A stretch of DNA of 63,078 bases, the filler included, from Guillardia theta CCMP2712 (taxonomy: Eukaryota; Protista; Cryptophyta), in NCBI RefSeq assembly GCF_000315625.1. It is 4 parts of 4 records of this genome, joined end to end, with 100 filler letters (N's around TTAATTAATTAA, not from the genome) between each part and the next. Parts side by side here need not be neighbours in the genome. Positions count along the whole stretch, not along the records: positions 53,105 to 63,078 come from NW_005434266.1; 3 more parts are not named here. The stretch is one strand, 5' to 3'. A program made the position numbers and the translations under genes. This document shows, one piece after another, positions 53,061 to 63,078 of this stretch. The notes beneath the pieces were generated by a model that searched no databases, was not told the origin of the DNA, and worked only from the letters and a program-made list of their open reading frames with translations. Positions within the stretch are counted from its first letter, which is position 1. Every line of letters starts with the position of its first letter.

Positions 53061-55675
53061 NNNNNNNNNNNNNNNNNNNNNNNNNNNNNNNNNNNNNNNN
53101 NNNNGGACCCCTTGGAGGATATGTTGGCAGTAGAGCTTCAAAGCTGCAGGATGACTAGAAAGGGGTGACAGGTGTTGCCGAATCCTCCACCCTTGGTCAT
53201 CGGTCCCCGCAAAGGAGCTGTAGCGCTTGATCGCCTGGATCAGGCTAGTGGTGTCGAGGATGTCAGTCAAATCCACCTGCAGCACTGCAAGCGCTTGCTG
53301 GGTGAGATGATCCGCGGAAGCACTTCCAAAGGCAGGCGACGCACCATCAGGGAACTTCTCTTGTGCTTCAGCAAGAAGATCAGCGAAAGATTCAGCCTTG
53401 TAGATGCCGGAGCTCAGTAGTGTCCGTACCGCCCGATGAAGGTCACCCGCAGTGAACTGATGAATCGCCAACTGTCGTTGGCGCTCGCTCGCAGAGGTGA
53501 GGGACAGCGTAGGTCGCGGCGGAGGAGCAGGCTCAGACTCCTGAGACGATTGGCCGGACTGCCGCTGCTCCCTCGGCCCGCGCGGTTGTGGTCGCTGCTG
53601 TTGCTGGTGTTGCTGCTGCTGCTGCTGCTGCTGCTGACGCTGGCGTTGCTGCTGCTGCTGCTGCTGCTGCGGTTGCTGCTGCTGCTGACGCGGGTGCTGC
53701 GGCTGCGCTGCGGCTGCTGCGGTTGCTGCTGGTGGCGGTGGTGTTGCGCTGCGCTGCGGCTGCGGCTGCGGCTGCAGCAGCTGCGATGTGGCTGCCGCCG
53801 CCGTTGCTGTTTCTGCCGTTGCCGCCGCCCTCCGAGGGCTGCTGGGGGCGGTTGCAGCTGCTCNNNNNNNNNNNNNNNNNNNNNNNNNNNNNNNNNNNNN
53901 NNNNNNNNNNNNNNNNNNNNNNNNNNNNNNNNNNNNNNNNNNNNNNNNNNNNNNNNNNNNNNNATGGCACACACAAAACACAAGCCCGAAAAGAACCAGC
54001 ACTGCTGGCACCCAGACGCGGCATCGCCAGCCCAAGCGCGAAGCCGCGCAGACAAGCAGCCTAAGGGTCAAGCAATCAAGCAACAAGCAGCAGGAGCATG
54101 CAGGAGGAAGAAAATCCCTTACACGCGATACCCGGAGGCAGCCGACTGACCACTGTCAGTCGAGACGTCCGCTCCCGCCACAAAGCGGGCGGCCGCGGAC
54201 GGAGAAAGGGCAGCCGCCGACAAGGAGCCGGCGTTGCCCGGGGGTCCGCCTGGGGCAGCGGACGGAGGGAGGCTGGACACATGAACACGATACCGCTCGA
54301 GGTAGTCCGCGTAAATCCTATCCCTTGTCCTCCTCGCTAGCCTCCGAGTCAGCGGTAGCCGAGTCAGCGGTAGCCGCCCGTGACGGCGGCGACGCCGCGG
54401 CAATGCCCAAGGACCGGCGTGACCCGACCGATGCCGGGGAGGAAGCAGGCGAGCTCGGACCAGCAGCAAGCACCCCACTCCACCCCACTCCGCTCCCGCC
54501 ACAAAGCGGGCGGCCGCGGACGGAGAAAGGGCAGCCGCCGACAAGGAGCTGCTTGTTGCTTGATTGCCTGACCCTTAGGCTGCTTGTCTGCGCGGCTTCG
54601 CGCTTGGGCTGGCGATGCCGCGTCTGGGTGCCAGCAGTGCTGGTTCTTTTCGGGCTTGTGTTTTGTGTGTGATTGTGCAGCTTCTCGCTGTGGACTGTGT
54701 GCCTGCCGGTTCAGCTTGTTCCTGCTTTGTTTTGCTTGAGGCATCGCATAGGATTTACTTGCAGAAGTACTTTTTACCTTCTGCCAGTAAATCCTATGCG
54801 ATGAGGAGCCGGCGTTGCCCGGGGGTCCGCCTGGGGCAGCGGACGGAGGGAGGCTGGACACATGAACACGGTACCGCTCGAGGTAGTCCTCCTCGCTAGC
54901 CTCCGAGTCAGCGGTAGCCGAGTCAGTGGTAGCCGCCCGTGACGGCGGCGACGCCGCCGCGGGCAATGCCCAAGGACCGGCGTGACCCGACCGATGCCGG
55001 GGAGGAAGCAGGCGAGCTCGGACCAGCAGCAAGCACCCCAGTGGTGTCGAGCTCTCCGGAGGCACCCGACGTCACAGTGAGGGACGGAGACGCCTCCGAG
55101 TCGCCAGCTCCGCGCCCATCGTCGGGGCCACTCGAAGGGTTTCCCCCATCGGAGTCGGAGACCTCCGGCGAAGACTCCTCGGGCGACTCGACAAAGTCCG
55201 AGGAGGAGCTGTCCTCTGGCTCGAGGAGTGCTTTCGCCCGCAAGGGCGTCATGCGCCTCGCACCAGACAAGAGCGCTTCCAGCGTCAGCTGCATGGTGAG
55301 GCGCTGATAGGTGGCGGCGCATTTGCGAGCCAAGACCTCAGCAGCAGGTCCGTCATCAGGCACGAAGTGCCGACCAAACGCCGCATCCTCAAGAGGCATC
55401 GAGCGCTGAGCAATGATGTCCGCAAGATACCAGATGAAGCGGAGGGTGTCAGGATGCAGGGTACCGTCCGTCGAGATGGCAAGAGGGATGAACGCTCGAG
55501 GAGGAGTAGTCATAGCATATGCAGCGCGATGTTTGCGAATCTTCTCAGACGCTGCAACATGGAGGGCGTCGAGGTTGACCTCCCCCCACTTGGTCAGGTC
55601 GGCAGAGCTACCAATGAAAGGGCGCAGCCGCCGCAGCCGCAGCCGCAGCCGCAGCCGCAGCCGCAACACCCGCGT

Positions 55676-55707
<32 letters not shown>

Positions 55708-55728
55708 GCAGCAGCAACGCCAGCGTCA

Positions 55729-55763
<35 letters not shown>

Positions 55764-57155
55764 AGCAAGGAACACAACCGCGCGGGCCGAGGGAGCAGCG
55801 GCAGTCCGGCCAATCGTCTCNNNNNNNNNNNNNNNNNNNNNNNNNNNNNNNNNNNNNNNNNNNNNNNNNNNNNNNNNNNNNNNNNNNNNNNNNNNNNNNN
55901 NNNNNNNNNNNNNNNNNNNNNNNNNNNNNNNNNNNNNNNNNNNNNNNNNNNNNNNNNNNNNNNNNNNNNNNNNNNNNNNNNNNNNNNNNNNNNNNNNNNN
56001 NNNNNNNNNNNNNNNNNNNNNNNNNNNNNNNNNNNNNNNNNNNNNNNNNNNNNNNNNNNNNNNNNNNNNNNNNNNNNNNNNNNNNNNNNNNNNNNNNNNN
56101 NNNNNNNNNNNNNNNNNNNNNNNNNNNNNNNNNNNNNNNNNNNNNNNNNNNNNNNNNNNNNNNNNNNNNNTTTTTTTCATCAGGTCCCGTCATCAAGCCC
56201 GAAGGGAGGGGAGCCGGGCCCCATGAACCCCGGTCCCGCTCGACAGGCGTCATAGGATTACTGGCCAGAAAGCCTCGAGGTAGTCCTCCTCGCTAGCCTC
56301 CGAGTCAGCGGTAGCCGAGTCAGTGGTAGCCGCCCGTGACGGCGGCGACGCCGCGGCAATGCCCCAAGGACCGGCGTGACCCGACCGATGCCGGGGAGGA
56401 AGCAGGCGAGCTCGGACCAGCAGCAAGCACCCCAGTGGTGTCGAGCTCTCCGGATGACATAGGATTTACTGGCAGAAGGTAAAAAGTGCCTCAAGCAAAA
56501 CAAAGCAGGAACAAGCTGAACCGGCAGGCACACAGTCCACAGCGAGAAGCTGCACAATCACACACAAAACACAAGCCCGAAAAGAACCAGCACTGCTGGC
56601 ACCCAGACGCGGCAGCGCCAGCCCAAGCGCGAAGCCGCGCAGACAAGCAGCCTAAGGGTCAAGCAATCAAGCAACAAACAGCAGGAGCATGCAGGAGGAA
56701 CTTCGAATAAAATCCCTTAGACGCGATACCCGGAGGCAGCCGACTGACCACTGTCAGTCGAGACGTCCGCTCAGTGCCGCCACAAAGCGGGCGGCCGCGG
56801 ACGGAGAAAGGGCAGCCGCCGACAAGGAGCCGGCGCTGCCCGGGTGCCCGCCTGGGGCAGCGGACGGAGGGAGGCTGGACACATGAACACGGTACCGCTC
56901 GAGGTAGTCCTCCTCGCTAGCCTCCGAGTCAGCGGTAGCCGAGTCAGTGGTAGCCGCCCGTGACGGCGGCGACGCCGCGGCAATGCCCAAGGACCGGCGT
57001 GACCCGACCGATGCCGGGGAGGAAGCAGGCGAGCTCGGACCAGCAGCAAGCACCCCAGTGGTGTCGAGCTCTCCGGAGGCACCCGACGTCACAGTGAGGG
57101 ACGGAGACGCCTCGCCAGCTCCGCGCCGATCGTCGGGGCCACTGGAAGGGTGTCC

Positions 57156-59397
57156 CCAAGGGTGGAGGATTCGGCAACACCTGTCACCCCTTTCTAGTCA
57201 TCCTGCAGCTTTGAAGCTCTACTGCCAACATATCCTCCAAGGGGTCCTTCTTGGCCGGATGCCGGATCTTCTTATTCCTGCCCTGTCAGCCATTCGTCGA
57301 GGAGGCAGATTTATTCCCCTCTCCAAGGGAGCTGATAAACCTGGTCTCCGGCCAATTGTCATCGGTTCAAGGCTGCACACCGTCGACTCGCGACGAAGCT
57401 TGCTTTGGCAGGGATTCGCTCATTTCTTGACCAGCACTTCCTCTCGTCTCACCCTCGAGCGATTCAGTTCGGACTCGATCGAGACGGCTGTCTGAAGTTC
57501 TCGCAAACCGCGTCAGCGCTCCTGCCCCTTCACGCTCGCGGTGATGATGAGGATGTTGCCAACCCCACAGTGCTGGTGAGCTTGGATGCAAAGAACGCCT
57601 TCAACTCCCTCGACCGCCAGGCTCTCTTCGATGCAATCGAGGGACGTGCGAGTCGCGACTACTTTGATGGGAGCATCACTGAAGGCGCAAGCTTGCCCTC
57701 TTGCGAGCATCTCCGTTTGTTCGCCTCCTACCTCTCCAGCTACTATGGAGACTCTGCTGACCTTCGACTCTTTCACAAAAGTCAGTCAGCCTCCGTTCAG
57801 TGTACCTCGGGCGTCTGTCAGGGCGATGTCCCCTCCAGCGTGTTTTTCTGCCACAGTATCCACCCCCTGCTCCTCCATATCGCAGAGCTTTTTCCCTCTG
57901 TTCGAGTCTTGGCCTATGCTGACAACGTCGTACTTGTCGGTCCACTCGAGGATGCCGTTGCAGCTACGTCCGCTATGAAGAAGTACATGGTGGCTGATCT
58001 GAAGCTAGAGATTCAACCTCGCGAGTCGAAAGTTTACATCCCCTCCTGGCATCAACACCCTGATCTCTCGCAGCTGAAGAAGAGCCTTAAGCGCCGTCTC
58101 AAGACTCAACTTCTTCACTTCGAGGTCGTCACTGGCGGGATTACACTTGGCGGCCTGCCTATCGGCACGGATGGATTTCATGCTAGTCAGCTCCGAGCGA
58201 AGGTCTCTACCCTCAACGACGAGCTCTCGAAGCTCGGGCTCGTCCAGCATGGCTTCATGTTCAAGACGCTGGTGAGGGCGAGCCATCTCCAGAAGCTGCG
58301 CTTCTTCCTCCAGGGGTCATCTCCGTTTCTCCCGCGGGTCCAATCACAGATTCGTCGCTTTGACCTCTCTGTCCACCTGGCGCTTGAGAAATACCACCGC
58401 TGGCCTTCCTCGCAGTACCTCGCCGCGCATCCCGACCTGCTAGACTGTTTACGAGGTTCAAGCGGGAGCTTCCGCATAGTCGGGGAGGGGACGAGTTCAC
58501 GCCCTCTGAGGGTCTACACCCTGCTGTTTACTATACGGCTATCGCTCGCTTCCTCGCTTGGTACTCTGACCAGCCCATGTCCCGGACCCTGCCCTCTCCT
58601 CATAGCCTGGACGTTCACTGCTCGAGATCTCTCCGTGCCCAGAAGCATCCTCTGGCGACCTTCTTCGTTGAGGCGCACGACTTCGTTCATAATGCTGGAG
58701 CGATCCTCTACCGTCGTGTGAAGGCTCCTGCACCGGCTGCAGATGGCGCGGCGATCCCACCTGCCCCGGCTGCTGTGCCTGATGACGCAGGACGCCCCCC
58801 GGCATCTGTGGTACACATCCCTGGTTTGCGCGCTCTCGTCGACTCGTCTCATGAGCACTTCATTCCGCCGCCTGCGCAGCGAAATGTGACCCCTCTTGTC
58901 ATGCGCGTCTTCCCTCGCCATGTGCATGCTCGCGCTGCGCTGACCGATCAGCAGCGTGATATCCTCACCTTGCACAGCCGCAGGACACACTCGCTCAAGT
59001 CGCAGGATAGGGTCTTGCAGTCTACCATCTTCGCTCATTTTCCTGAGCGAGACCTGAGCCACTCTCCGATGCGAGTCTCGAGCTACTACCCCCTCAAGGC
59101 CTTCCCGCACCGCTATGCTCAGATGCTCGACTGCTATCTCCATGGCATGCCGATCTGCCAGTGTCCGACGGAATGTGATGGATGTCAGCGCGAGCTCGAT
59201 CCCTCCGTTGCTGCACATCATCTCCAGACCTGCAAACGCCGATCCTCCAAGCTTCCAACGGCGCATGACAACCTTACTCGTACGATTCGGTCGATGCTGA
59301 ACGAAGCTGGTCTTCAGAGCGTCATCGATACAGTGGGGGATCCTCGTTCTCGACGGCAGGTACCCTCCCATCCTCAGCATGGCCGCAAGATGAAGGG
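57156..59397 (+). pseudogene. Frameshifted reverse transcriptase-thumb-CCHC region of the CRE-like element
   Basis: GLRPIVIG, QFG, LVSLDAKNAFNSLDR, SGVCQGDVPSS, LAYADN, LGGLPIG. 2-bp insertions at about 57378 and 58448. Continues at 61473 after the LTR insert. Confidence 0.88.
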
Positions 59398-59624
59398 TGT
59401 TAGGGATTGACAATCCTGATGATGTGCTTTGACTCTGTGAACTTGAACCAACTTGATAACTTGCGTTAACAAGCAAACAGGAACCTCAACACAACCGCGC
59501 TCACTGAACGTATAGAAAGTTCGGATCCATTTTATTCGACCAAAACCTACCAAACCGACCAAACCGACCGGATAAGACAGCTAGTTGACTGAAGTATTCG
59601 TAACCGCTTACGTAACCCCTAACA
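59398..59624 (-). repeat. 3' LTR
   Basis: Identical to 61246-61472. AATAAA present on the - strand. Confidence 0.93.
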
Positions 59625-59758
59625 TACGCTCCCAAGCGCATTATCATCTGAGAAACATCTCTATGAACTTCGCTGATCATTAAGATACTGCATAACAAGA
59701 AAACGGCAGCCAACTCAAGTCATTTCAATTGAGTAGCGCGAAGTGCATTGGGCCAATG

Positions 59759-61147
59759 TTATTCACGTAAGTCCTCCTCATCCTGAGTAGAAGATGAATG
59801 CTGAGAATCTTCGTCGGTATCCTCCGCTGACTCGTCATCGTACGAAACCTCATGATGCGTTGACCTGTCATTCCTATACGCATCGGTTGTCAAATCCATG
59901 GACTTAGCTTCTCGATACAATGCTGGCAACAAACTCCCAATACTCAAAGTCTTGTTCACATTTTGCTTTTCCAAGTCAATTAACAACTTCATGACGAAAC
60001 TCGCGGTCACCTCATTGAACAAATTCTGTGCGAAATACCGTTCAAGACCAAACCTCGTGCAAGCTGTCTCGACTTGTCCTTGTCCATGAAATAACACCAT
60101 GCAACAAGCAATAAAATGATTTGCTAAAGCTGAAAACCTGTTGACAAAATCCGAAGTCTTTTCCTCTGACCCTTGTATCGTACGTTGAATCTCACCCAGA
60201 ATATACTGCAAGTGCGACAACGACAAATATTCCTTCACCAGCAACGATTTGAATGATTCCCAAGTACCTTGTGTGGAAATTAATCTATCCTCGCCACGCA
60301 ATGTTTGCAACCAATTCCTCACACGATTACCAACTAATGTTGCAGCAATGTCAACCTTTTGACCTGGAGGGATTCTTTGACGCTGGAATTGAAACTCAAG
60401 CTCCCCAAACCAACTTGCAACGGAATATTCTAGAGTCATTTCTCCATTAAATCGAGAAATATCCTTGGAATGAAACTTCACAAGGGAAGACTGCTGCTTG
60501 ACATGTTGACTTGACATGTCGTTCGACATGCTCGTATTATTTTGCTTGCATGTTGCATCAGCCCCTCTTGGTTCCTTGATCGGAAGGTATTGAACTGCTC
60601 CTGATTCATTTAATCTGAACCGTTGCATCATTTCCTCGAACATTTTTTTATTTTCTTCCCTAAGGACAGAGATTTCCTGTTTTGTCTCGACGAGCTCGCT
60701 TTCCTTACGAAACATCACTTCCTTGACGAAAGCTTCATACTTTACTTGCATGTCCATTGCAAGTTGCAATTCTTCTCGCAACTTCTTGTTTGCAGCGACC
60801 AATTCTTCAAACTGCACTGATTCGAACCTCGGCCGGGTCGAACCTGCCGGAGACGCAATCCTGGAAATTTCCAAGTCCACTGCGCCCTCCCTGTCGCGCA
60901 CTTGTTGCGTGACCGATCCGTCATAAGAAGGTATATTAATCCTCGAAAATCCCGCGACGTCTCGCCGATTTCCGTTCGGATCCTCTTCTGAGGTAGAAGG
61001 TACCGTCGTAACTTCCCTCATCGTCTTGTCTTCAGGCGTTTCCTCATCGAAACTCCTTCTGAAGTTGTCAAGCATGACTGCCAAGCCTGAACTTCCAAGA
61101 GGACCATCTCCAGGAGACCTTCTTATCCTTTCTACATCCGATTGCAT
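59759..61147 (-). CDS. Gag-like protein (coiled coil + retrotransposon capsid-like region + acidic tail), 462 aa
   Basis: Intact intronless ORF between the LTRs. FNG..VASWF..LE..F, LVGNRVRNWL, TWESFKSLL and IQGSEEKTSDFVNRF (MHR-like) fit the Ty3/gypsy Gag pattern. Confidence 0.8.
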   Translation of the reverse strand: MQSDVERIRRSPGDGPLGSSGLAVMLDNFRRSFDEETPEDKTMREVTTVPSTSEEDPNGNRRDVAGFSRINIPSYDGSVTQQVRDREGAVDLEISRIASPAGSTRPRFESVQFEELVAANKKLREELQLAMDMQVKYEAFVKEVMFRKESELVETKQEISVLREENKKMFEEMMQRFRLNESGAVQYLPIKEPRGADATCKQNNTSMSNDMSSQHVKQQSSLVKFHSKDISRFNGEMTLEYSVASWFGELEFQFQRQRIPPGQKVDIAATLVGNRVRNWLQTLRGEDRLISTQGTWESFKSLLVKEYLSLSHLQYILGEIQRTIQGSEEKTSDFVNRFSALANHFIACCMVLFHGQGQVETACTRFGLERYFAQNLFNEVTASFVMKLLIDLEKQNVNKTLSIGSLLPALYREAKSMDLTTDAYRNDRSTHHEVSYDDESAEDTDEDSQHSSSTQDEEDLRE

Positions 61148-61245
61148 ATCCAGAGGTTACCTTTCAAGCTCCTTTTCGATCAAATCAAATCAAATTGTCG
61201 CAATCCGCAATTACTTCAAACAAAAACCAAACCTTACGCTACCAA

Positions 61246-61472
61246 TGTTAGGGATTGACAATCCTGATGATGTGCTTTGACTCTGTGAACTTGAACCAAC
61301 TTGATAACTTGCGTTAACAAGCAAACAGGAACCTCAACACAACCGCGCTCACTGAACGTATAGAAAGTTCGGATCCATTTTATTCGACCAAAACCTACCA
61401 AACCGACCAAACCGACCGGATAAGACAGCTAGTTGACTGAAGTATTCGTAACCGCTTACGTAACCCCTAACA
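61246..61472 (-). repeat. 5' LTR
   Basis: Followed on - by tggtagcg (resembles the initiator-tRNA PBS TGGTAGCGCC of Ty1/Ty3). Confidence 0.93.
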
Positions 61473-63078
61473 AAGGGCGATATCCACATCCCTGGAATCC
61501 GCGATCGAGGGTCCGAGCAGTGCGGCTGCGGCTGCGGCTGCGGCGGCTGCGCCCTTTCATTGGTAGCTCTGCCGACCTGACCAAGTGGGGGGAGGTCAAC
61601 CTCGACGCCCTCCATGTTGCAGCGTCTGAGAAGATTCGCAAACATCGCGCTGCATATGCTATGACTACTCCTCCTCGAGCGTTCATCCCTCTTGCCATCT
61701 CGACGGANNNNNNNNNNNNNNNNNNNNNNNNNNNNNNNNNNNNNNNNNNNNNNNNNNNNNNNNNNNNNNNNNNNNNNNNNNNNNNNNNNNNNNNNNNNNN
61801 NNNNNNNNNNNNNNNNNNNNNNNNNNNNNNNNNNNNNNNNNNNNNNNNNNNNNNNNNNNNNNNNNNNNNNNNNNNNNNNNNNNNNNTGACGCTGCCATGC
61901 AGCTGACGCTGGAAGCGCTCTGTCTGGTGCGAGGCGCATGACGCCCTTGCGGGCGCAAGCACTTCTCGAGCCAGAGGACAGACTTTGTCGAGTCGCCCGA
62001 GGAGTCTTCGCCGGAGGTCTCCGACTCCGATGGGGGACACCCTTCGAGTGGCCCCGACGATGGGCGCGGAGCTGGCGACTCGGAGGCGTCTCCGTCCCTC
62101 ACTGTGACGTCGGGTGCCTCCGGAGAGCTCGACACCACTGGGGTGCTTGCTGCTGGTCCGAGCTCGCCTGCTTCCTCCCCGGCATCGGTCGGGTCACGCC
62201 GGTCCTTGGGCATTGCCGCGGCGTCGCCGCCGTCACGGGCGGCTACCACTGACTCGGCTACCGCTGACTCGGAGGCTAGCGAGGAGGACTACCTCGAGCG
62301 GTACCGTGTTCATGTGTCCAGCCTCCCTCCGTCCGCTGCCCCAGGCGGACCCCCGGGCAACGCCGGCTCCTTGTCGGCGGCTGCCCTTTCTCCGTCCGCG
62401 GCCGCCCGCTTTGTGGCGGCAGCGGACGTCTCGACTGACAGTGGTCAGTCGGCTGCCTCCGGGTATCGCGTGTAAGGGATTTTCTTCCTCCTGCATGCTC
62501 CTGCTGCTTGTTGCTTGATTGCTTGACCCTTAGGCTGCTTGTCTGCGCGGCTTCACGCTTGGGCTGGCGATGCCGCGTCTGGGTGCCAGCAGTGCTGGTT
62601 CTTTTCGGGCTTGTGTTTTGTGTGTGATTGTGCAGCTTCTCGCTGTGCGCTGTGTGCCAGGAGGTTTAGCTTGATCCTGCTTTGTTTTGCTTGAGGCACT
62701 TTTTACCTTCTGCCAGTAAATCCTATGACTTACTGGCAGAAGGTAGGNNNNNNNNNNNNNNNNNNNNNNNNNNNNNNNNNNNNNNNNNNNNNNNNNNNNN
62801 NNNNNNNNNNNNNNNNNNNNNNNNNNNNNNNNNNNNNNNNNNNNNNNNNNNNNNNNNNNNNNNNACCCAGACGCGGCAGCGCCAGCCCAAGCGCGAAGCC
62901 GCGCAGACCGTACCGACAAGCAGCCTAAGGGTCAAGCAATCAAGCAACAAGCAGTAGGAGCATGCAGGAGGAATAAAATCCCTTAGACGCCAGTAAATCC
63001 TGTAGGCAAGACGCGATACCCGGAGGCAGCCGACTGACCACTGTCAGTCGAGACGTCCGCTGCCGCCACAAAGCGGGC

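Follow-up and report, generated by a model that had tools for sequence, protein, structure and literature searches.

Scaffold NW_005434266.1 of the cryptophyte alga Guillardia theta CCMP2712, which is contained in full (9,974 bp) at positions 53105-63078 of the window that we analysed (a stretch of 63,078 nucleotides, filler included, whose numbering is used below unless another locus is named), is occupied over ~6.5 kb by one family of retrotransposon without long terminal repeats (a non-LTR retrotransposon). What is new here is a non-site-specific, self-nesting element of predicted R2-type architecture in a cryptophyte, together with an unusually rich record of its aborted insertions. Four small inserts in the scaffold are pieces of the element's own 3' end, lodged within its other copies, and fragments of the same kind are found at eight further loci in both orientations. 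These inserts probably arose when the family inserted anew, each time separately, into its older copies by target-primed reverse transcription that broke off at a very early stage, and the antisense bias that a first reading of the scaffold had suggested is a small-sample impression.

Four private inserts carry the 3' end of the element

The sequence-only reading of this scaffold had placed four inserts here, all derived from the element's 3' end, and their positions and origin were borne out when the host copies were aligned. Uninterrupted versions of the sites are seen in paralogous copies on the same scaffold, and across nine loci the inserts are private, since no other copy carries any of the four and 35-98 copies show each empty site. 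The short host duplications ascribed to inserts A, B and C (GTCC, AGGAGC and AGACGC; Table 1) are likewise present, and none of the four inserts touches an assembly gap. Inserts A and C each contain 11 contiguous nt from the last 14 nt of the element, a match to the terminus for which the chance expectation is ~2e-5 per insert; 5-7 other nt come after this match. Insert B is the 3' untranslated region (UTR) from 28 nt past the stop codon to its end, with the terminus ...AAATCCTATG followed by five extra nt, CGATG. The piece found inside B is the reverse complement of the last ~24 nt of B, with three to five of the extra nucleotides that are private to B among them; it lies precisely between two neighbouring UTR bases and forms, with 54778-54803, a hairpin-like inverted repeat (54742-54803 is self-inverted at 85.7%). 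The host site of C is at the stop codon, where insertions recur.

All four inserts, the inner piece being inverted within B (Table 1), were read as sense on the plus strand within minus-strand copies. They are thus antisense to their hosts, in a geometry that joins the new complementary DNA (cDNA) to the host sense strand, as had been proposed. Three to four antisense inserts out of four in a single scaffold is not significant on its own.

Family copies also hold many further inserts of 8-19 nt that lack the 3' motif; one of these, a 9-nt insert (CGTACCGAC) at 62909-62917 in the antisense host of C, is unlike the element's 3' end.

Nested fragments share one anatomy and occur in both orientations

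Our wider sample consisted of eight other G. theta loci (L001-L008, ~170 kb), which were picked through reverse transcriptase (RT) gene models, a choice that is blind to how inserts are oriented. In all, 112 occurrences of the 3'-terminal motif were counted; in a motif search with an 8-mer and one mismatch, chance matches dominate below 15 nt, and this class was ignored. A nested event was defined as a 3'-end fragment lying between two collinear halves of another copy, and the list of such events, which includes one inside the reference copy at L006 itself, was curated by hand.

The lengths of fragments extending to the 3' end grade continuously from ~12 nt to more than 800 nt, with 34 of 107 shorter than 50 nt, 80 of 107 shorter than 200 nt and seven longer than 800 nt. 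In the 27 simple nested events, the host is duplicated over 3-11 bp in 17 and over 25 bp once, whereas six have a duplication of 0-1 bp and the other three have lost host sequence. At the 5' junction, 17 overlap by 0-5 nt and the rest contain filler, and the conserved AAATCC is typically separated from the host by 4-11 nt. Duplications were scored by overlap in reference coordinates together with inspection, as an automatic finder with shifted boundaries over-called lengths of 4-6 bp by chance. Judged by eye, micro-inserts shaped like A and C, in which 7-14 or 20-27 terminal nt and a short tail are accompanied by a duplication of 4-10 bp, recur at L002 15224, L004 8081, L004 21811, L005 17397, L005 18726 and L006 11087. 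Junction anatomy is the same where the flank is non-family DNA.

The orientation of these events is mixed. The curated list holds 19 antisense and 25 co-oriented events (two-sided p 0.45; one-sided p for an antisense excess 0.85), or 16 and 25 in the eight loci that remain when the discovery scaffold is excluded (0.21; 0.94). Micro-inserts of less than 40 nt divide evenly, seven against seven (1.0; 0.61), and a fully automatic count of family DNA adjoining any 3' junction gave 39 antisense and 50 co-oriented (0.29; 0.90). The general antisense bias put forward by the sequence-only reading is therefore not seen, the ratio being roughly even, which is the outcome that the reading itself had named as contrary to its proposal. 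The bias is a small-sample impression.

The reading had also proposed an R-loop model, in which RNA of the element anneals to the template strand of an old copy and the sense strand, displaced and nicked, serves as primer for the RT; this process would depend on homology and yield antisense inserts only. Such a natural, prime-editing-like mechanism would be striking if true, and it would suit both the antisense setting of the four scaffold inserts and a host site at the stop codon for which five or more antisense insertions are present in these data. The wider sample gives it no support because orientation there is mixed: co-oriented inserts of the same anatomy are at least as common (25 versus 19 events; 50 versus 39 junctions). 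Moreover, pairing by a full-length RNA would not put the RNA 3' end at the scattered host positions seen, and inspection by eye of the listed junctions, where hosts are nearly always family DNA, showed no complementarity or homology of the RNA 3' end to the target. We regard this model as very improbable.

The element has a predicted R2-type architecture

The RT open reading frame (ORF) is 100% identical to GUITHDRAFT_122725, and all 18 of its relatives in a protein word search are G. theta proteins; at this level the family is found only in G. theta. Its RT domain matches Pfam RVT_1 with an E-value of 2.3e-6 (27.9 bits, slightly below the 29.6-bit cut-off) and scores 0.96-0.97 to RVT_1 clusters in an Atlas feature search. 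For the region C-terminal of the RT, sequence searches returned no Pfam family or PDB match, and an exhaustive HMMER search recovered distant homologues at 25-44% identity. In an alignment of 37 sequences (the element and 36 of these homologues), CCHC, RHD, GD, DVT and K..KH motifs are conserved, and the two aspartates and the lysine are invariant or nearly so. The C-terminal domain was modelled with a predicted local distance difference test (pLDDT) score of 89.9 when the homologue alignment was supplied, versus 34 from the single sequence, and the six best PDB matches to this model are, without exception, proteins of R2 retrotransposons of zebra finch, turtle and silkmoth (E-values 2.5e-5 to 1.9e-3; template modelling (TM) scores 0.48-0.60). 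Because the RT match, the conserved C-terminal motifs and the predicted fold agree in this, the family appears to be a non-LTR retrotransposon of R2-type architecture, with an RT followed by a CCHC motif and a restriction-like PD-(D/E)XK endonuclease. The 5' end of the element, where an N-terminal zinc-finger or Myb DNA-binding domain would be expected in an R2-type element, lies on the far side of a poly-glutamine repeat and a gap.

The copies also have the traits of non-LTR elements: they lack terminal repeats, are truncated at variable 5' points, generate target duplications and share a fixed 3' end (...CCAGTAAATCC). Past this end comes a tail of 3-5 nt, of a few recurrent types (TATG, TATAC, ATTA, ATCG, ACTA), usually followed by 2-5 more nt before the host resumes. 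An Rfam scan for ribozymes and other RNAs, as pointers to Penelope-like or other element types, gave only chance matches to CAG repeats, and DIRS-like and Penelope-like readings of the inverted pieces were dropped after the R2-type architecture was shown.

One specific target sequence, of the kind used by R2 proper, NeSL and others, was not found, as insertion points are spread across the element with some hot spots, and no shared motif was seen by eye in the non-family flanks or nick sites. Two hot spots stand out. The stop-codon site was used at window 62985-63014, L001 9293, L006 13409-13460 and L002 16703, mostly in antisense, and two different junctions at this site are also present in sequencing run X1. 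A site just past the endonuclease DVT motif was used four times, always by co-oriented fragments (L003 6235, L006 453, L001 14234 and L007 7059), and two more host sites have two uses each, in the same orientation. This recurrence hints at strand-specific nicking preferences.

Early-aborted target-primed insertion as the probable origin, and its rivals

We favour target-primed reverse transcription at nicks in pre-existing copies as the simplest account, as it explains the two orientations together with the duplications, the tails and the continuous range of lengths. Each insert would begin at a nick in an old copy, whose 3'-OH would prime the RT; a few extra nucleotides would be added at the junction, and copying would start at the exact 3' end of the element RNA. 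Synthesis would then halt after 7-30 nt (A and C) or a few hundred nt (B), and the short cDNA would be joined across a staggered break to leave the 3-11 bp target duplication, with the nicked strand setting the orientation and both strands being used. The inner piece of B may be a side product, made if the nascent cDNA folded back after ~29 nt, copied its own start, extra nucleotides included, and then resumed on the RNA at the next base. We infer this order of events, the priming chemistry and the snap-back; junction anatomy, duplications, privateness, the continuum of lengths, mixed orientation and R2-type enzyme domains are shown by the analysis.

Four observations weigh against this reading. 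None of A, B or C has read-level support, and the short unitigs available neither bridge nor contradict A and B. Secondly, the simplest, single-fragment events are skewed, with 22 co-oriented and five antisense (p 0.002), a skew that insertion into DNA alone does not predict; sets of two or three tail fragments in tandem are commoner among the antisense events. Thirdly, no younger age of the inserts could be measured: in 19 pairs, inserts diverge from the family majority by a mean of 3.7% and their hosts by 3.1% (p 0.2). This comparison, which the sequence-only reading had suggested for telling template jumping from re-targeting, is confounded by region, as inserts are UTR and hosts mostly coding. 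Finally, the share of family DNA at 3' junctions is high, and random insertion leaves it unexplained.

This last point concerns the nests themselves. At all nine loci the family forms a nest of 5-12 kb among ordinary genes, and 89 of 117 3' junctions (at least 76%) abut family DNA, with several of the other 28 proving to be family DNA on inspection. Family DNA makes up ~46% of the sampled loci; the G. theta genome is 87 Mb, and the family's share there is surely far below this figure. The family might home to its own copies, on either strand, by recognising family DNA, chromatin or nascent transcripts, which we consider doubtful. If it did, the 10-kb nests would be actively built, the stop-codon site and the site by the DVT motif would be nicked strand-specifically, and the micro-inserts would be traces, left naturally in vivo, of an R2-type enzyme failing at initiation. 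Targeting to nest chromatin (compare the Zepp-like clusters discussed below), local re-integration, or survival only outside genes in a compact genome could also account for the nesting.

A different origin for the same nests would be template switching within one event, in which the RT leaves the host RNA in mid-copying, copies the 3' end of a second family RNA or the start of another cDNA, and jumps back. An RNA 3' end would give a co-oriented insert and the 5' start of another cDNA an antisense one; a return a few nt upstream of the exit would leave a pseudo target duplication, and nests would be built during retrotransposition, without re-targeting. This would account for same-family hosts without targeting, for the similar divergence of insert and host, for the mostly co-oriented simple events (22 versus 5), and for the tandem 3'-end fragments, the snap-back in B and a complex event at L001 10881-11195; the RT of R2 is indeed known to jump between templates in vitro, and to add non-templated nucleotides (PMC8857657). 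Against this, it offers no reason why 3-11 nt of host should be re-copied so regularly; at the listed junctions, the cDNA of the insert's 5' end was not seen to be complementary to the host bases that are duplicated; and for antisense inserts the RT would have to enter a cDNA template 11-14 nt from the end. That junctions at non-family flanks share this anatomy is also unexpected, and an unrelated LTR element has inserted into the nest with a 5-bp duplication of its own. On balance, we hold it to be an unlikely source of the inserts as a class.

Template switching is nonetheless real in this family, because tail-to-tail pairs and tandem tails recur. The junction at 62728 is a near-palindrome centred on the 3' end of sense copy S1, with arms at 62705-62720 and 62730-62745. 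Facing 3' ends, 2-30 bp apart and sometimes with a piece of host between them, are found at L003 7251/7291, L006 13409/13460 and 13564/13610, L007 5293/5341 and 13620/13670, L002 16402/16455 and window 62705-62745. By a rough estimate these pairs exceed the frequency expected of independent insertions; they could reflect turn-around synthesis, or a hot spot made by the first insertion. Tandem tails lie at L002 14896, L004 21715 and L003 6904. Among the structures on the scaffold, template switching or snap-back is needed only for the inner piece of B (54744-54769) and the 62728 junction. The template-jumping model of the sequence-only reading is therefore supported for these two structures only and is unneeded for the duplication-flanked inserts.

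DNA-level repair would dispense with RNA and element enzymes altogether, if end joining of the polymerase-theta type had copied short stretches of nearby DNA in either orientation. The short length of the inserts, their two orientations, extra nucleotides and microhomology would all fit, and L007 8862-8879 points to unusual healing of breaks in a nest. The inserted pieces, however, all end at the element's 3' terminus rather than being arbitrary nearby sequence, and regular 3-11 bp duplications with a continuum up to whole copies fit retrotransposition, leaving repair as an improbable explanation. The insert at L007 8862-8879 is itself an 18-nt piece of telomere type (TTTAGGG, ~2.5 units) in an otherwise collinear family copy, the sole such match in the eight loci, and may be the trace of a nest break mended by telomerase or by a reverse transcriptase like it.

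Read evidence

The read data consist of Logan unitigs, 60-150 nt long within the repeat. In run X1 (X15 for some), they contain many distinct joints between the element terminus (54794-54798) and other family positions, many with 1-16 filler letters, which supports a diversity of junctions beyond that in the assembly, although the runs may not be independent of the material from which it was made. Unitigs also show the canonical UTR lacking the inner piece. We considered whether the inserts might be artefacts, made by chimeric joins in a gap-ridden repeat scaffold. The scaffold does hold four gaps and a 187-bp stretch that is 100% identical between copies otherwise 96% identical, and no read contig bridges A or B. 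Yet 18-nt inserts with exact 4-6 bp duplications in collinear copies are unlike mis-joins, inserts of the same kind stand at 40 other places on eight large scaffolds, and the same junction type appears in unitigs from other runs, all of which makes an artefact extremely improbable.

Two observations concern the runs themselves. Run X1, which is labelled as probable DNA, comprises only 99 million letters, yet words of the 3' UTR reach a depth of 250,000-360,000 in it; the library may be RNA or enriched material, and if it is RNA, the family is very highly expressed. In addition, 45-49% of sampled words of this marine alga's repeat are present in runs X2-X8, X10 and X12-X14, which are lake-water, aquatic, freshwater and runoff metagenomes from several studies, and run X3 yields contigs of 258 and 470 nt that match window 55142-55620 with 2-3 differences. 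These matches could stem from library carry-over, from a spike-in or from a closely related organism in which this family is active too.

Organisation of the scaffold

The copies, their guests and the gaps are arranged as listed in Table 1.

Table 1. Family copies, inserts and other features of scaffold NW_005434266.1, in window coordinates.
Feature	Coordinates	Strand	Description
Insert A	54305..54330	+	18 nt (54309-54326) between GTCC 54305-54308 and 54327-54330
Insert B	54544..54809	+	254 nt (54550-54803) between AGGAGC 54544-54549 and 54804-54809
Inner piece of B	54744-54769	-	26 nt, inverted; no flanking duplication
Insert C	62985..63014	+	18 nt (62991-63008) between AGACGC 62985-62990 and 63009-63014
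Antisense 5' fragment	53105-53578	-	Same family
Copy 1	53968..54477	-	5'-truncated; 3' part of ORF and 3' UTR; hosts insert A; 97.4-97.6% identical to reference copy L006
Copy 2	54489..55622	-	Pieces 54489-54549 and 54804-55622, split by its guest, insert B
Co-oriented example	56251..56454	-	Last 22 nt of element (56251-56272) abut internal point of copy 56274-56454
700-nt 3' copy, antisense	56458..57157	-	3' end after 3 filler nt (TGA, 56455-56457) within another copy
Sense copy S1	57156..62727	+	RT, CCHC, endonuclease, 3' UTR 62476-62727
S1 pieces	57156-59398 and 61473-62727	+	Split by LTR element 59399-61472; also holds gap 61708-61886
Antisense copy, tail-to-tail with S1	62728..63078	-	Hosts insert C; contains gap 62748-62864
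Short LTR retrotransposon	59399-61472		Within S1; 227-bp LTRs 100% identical, starting TGTTAGGG; 5-bp AAGGG duplication

Three of the four runs of N can be judged by their flanks. The flanks of gap 61708-61886 are collinear in one copy, with ~162-170 nt expected from the paralogue at 55297-55466 and 179 N written; those of gap 62748-62864 are collinear with an antisense copy that starts 3 nt past the S1 3' end, with 117-119 nt expected and 117 N written. The flanks of gap 55821-56170 are non-collinear (sense 5' region versus unrelated sequence), so that continuity across it is unsupported.

Whatever the gaps hold, S1 is a dead copy. At 61521-61550 it carries a (GCGGCT)5 block in place of the 34 nt that encode the catalytic DVT motif of the endonuclease, and in copy 2 a GCGGCT repeat at 55624-55653 is followed by an inverted junction to the poly-glutamine 5' region of the element. 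The 187 bp that are 100% identical lie at 55467-55653 and 61521-61707, in copies ~96% alike elsewhere, and could be due to gene conversion, to recombination via the microsatellite or to assembly duplication. At 57156/57157, the 5'-truncated ends of the antisense 700-nt copy and of S1 meet head-to-head with a few nt of overlap, which looks like the result of reverse transcription primed at both ends of one break from RNA 3' ends.

The LTR element that splits S1 looks like a recent insertion. Its sole ORF, on the minus strand at 59759-61147, is gag-like (Pfam Retrotrans_gag, E-value 6.5e-5); a tRNA-primer-like site lies beside the LTR on the same strand, and the element is AT-richer than its surroundings.

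Comparison with known systems

R2-type enzymes are under development as gene-insertion tools, for which abort rate, stray nucleotides, fold-back and restart all matter, and the G. theta family has left a natural and dense trail of failures of this kind, as scars of 12-30 nt, tandem tails and hairpins, which could be mined genome-wide.

Mammalian LINE-1, a long interspersed element (LINE), reportedly shows extreme 5' truncation, twin priming and endonuclease-independent insertion. The G. theta family resembles it in its dead-on-arrival truncated copies, target duplications and 5' microhomology, and in inverted head-to-head structures such as that at 57156/57157. Unlike in LINE-1, the inverted structures have two arms that each begin at the 3' end of the RNA rather than at an internal site, fragments are as short as ~12 nt and there is no poly(A).

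In green algae, Zepp and Zepp-like LINEs form localised clusters, at the putative centromeres of Coccomyxa and Chlamydomonas, that consist mostly of one LINE family with other transposons mixed in (PMC9940879). The G. theta clusters are similar in being mainly one LINE family inserted into itself, with nests at all nine loci. Zepp, however, belongs to the L1 clade, whereas the G. theta family has an endonuclease of predicted R2 type rather than of apurinic type, and its nests measure ~5-12 kb and lie among genes.

The G. theta family also resembles R2-type retrotransposons, such as R2 of Bombyx mori and zebra finch. The two differ in that the endonuclease regions share only ~13-18% sequence identity, and the N-terminal DNA-binding part of the G. 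theta element was not recovered. In both, an RT is followed by a CCHC motif and a PD-(D/E)XK endonuclease, whose predicted fold in G. theta matches R2 structures; both end at a defined 3' terminus that lacks poly(A), carry added nucleotides where this terminus meets the host, are truncated on the 5' side and show signs of template switching. Unlike R2, the G. theta family is not limited to a single target such as the 28S rDNA and has inserted at many sites, mostly inside its own copies.

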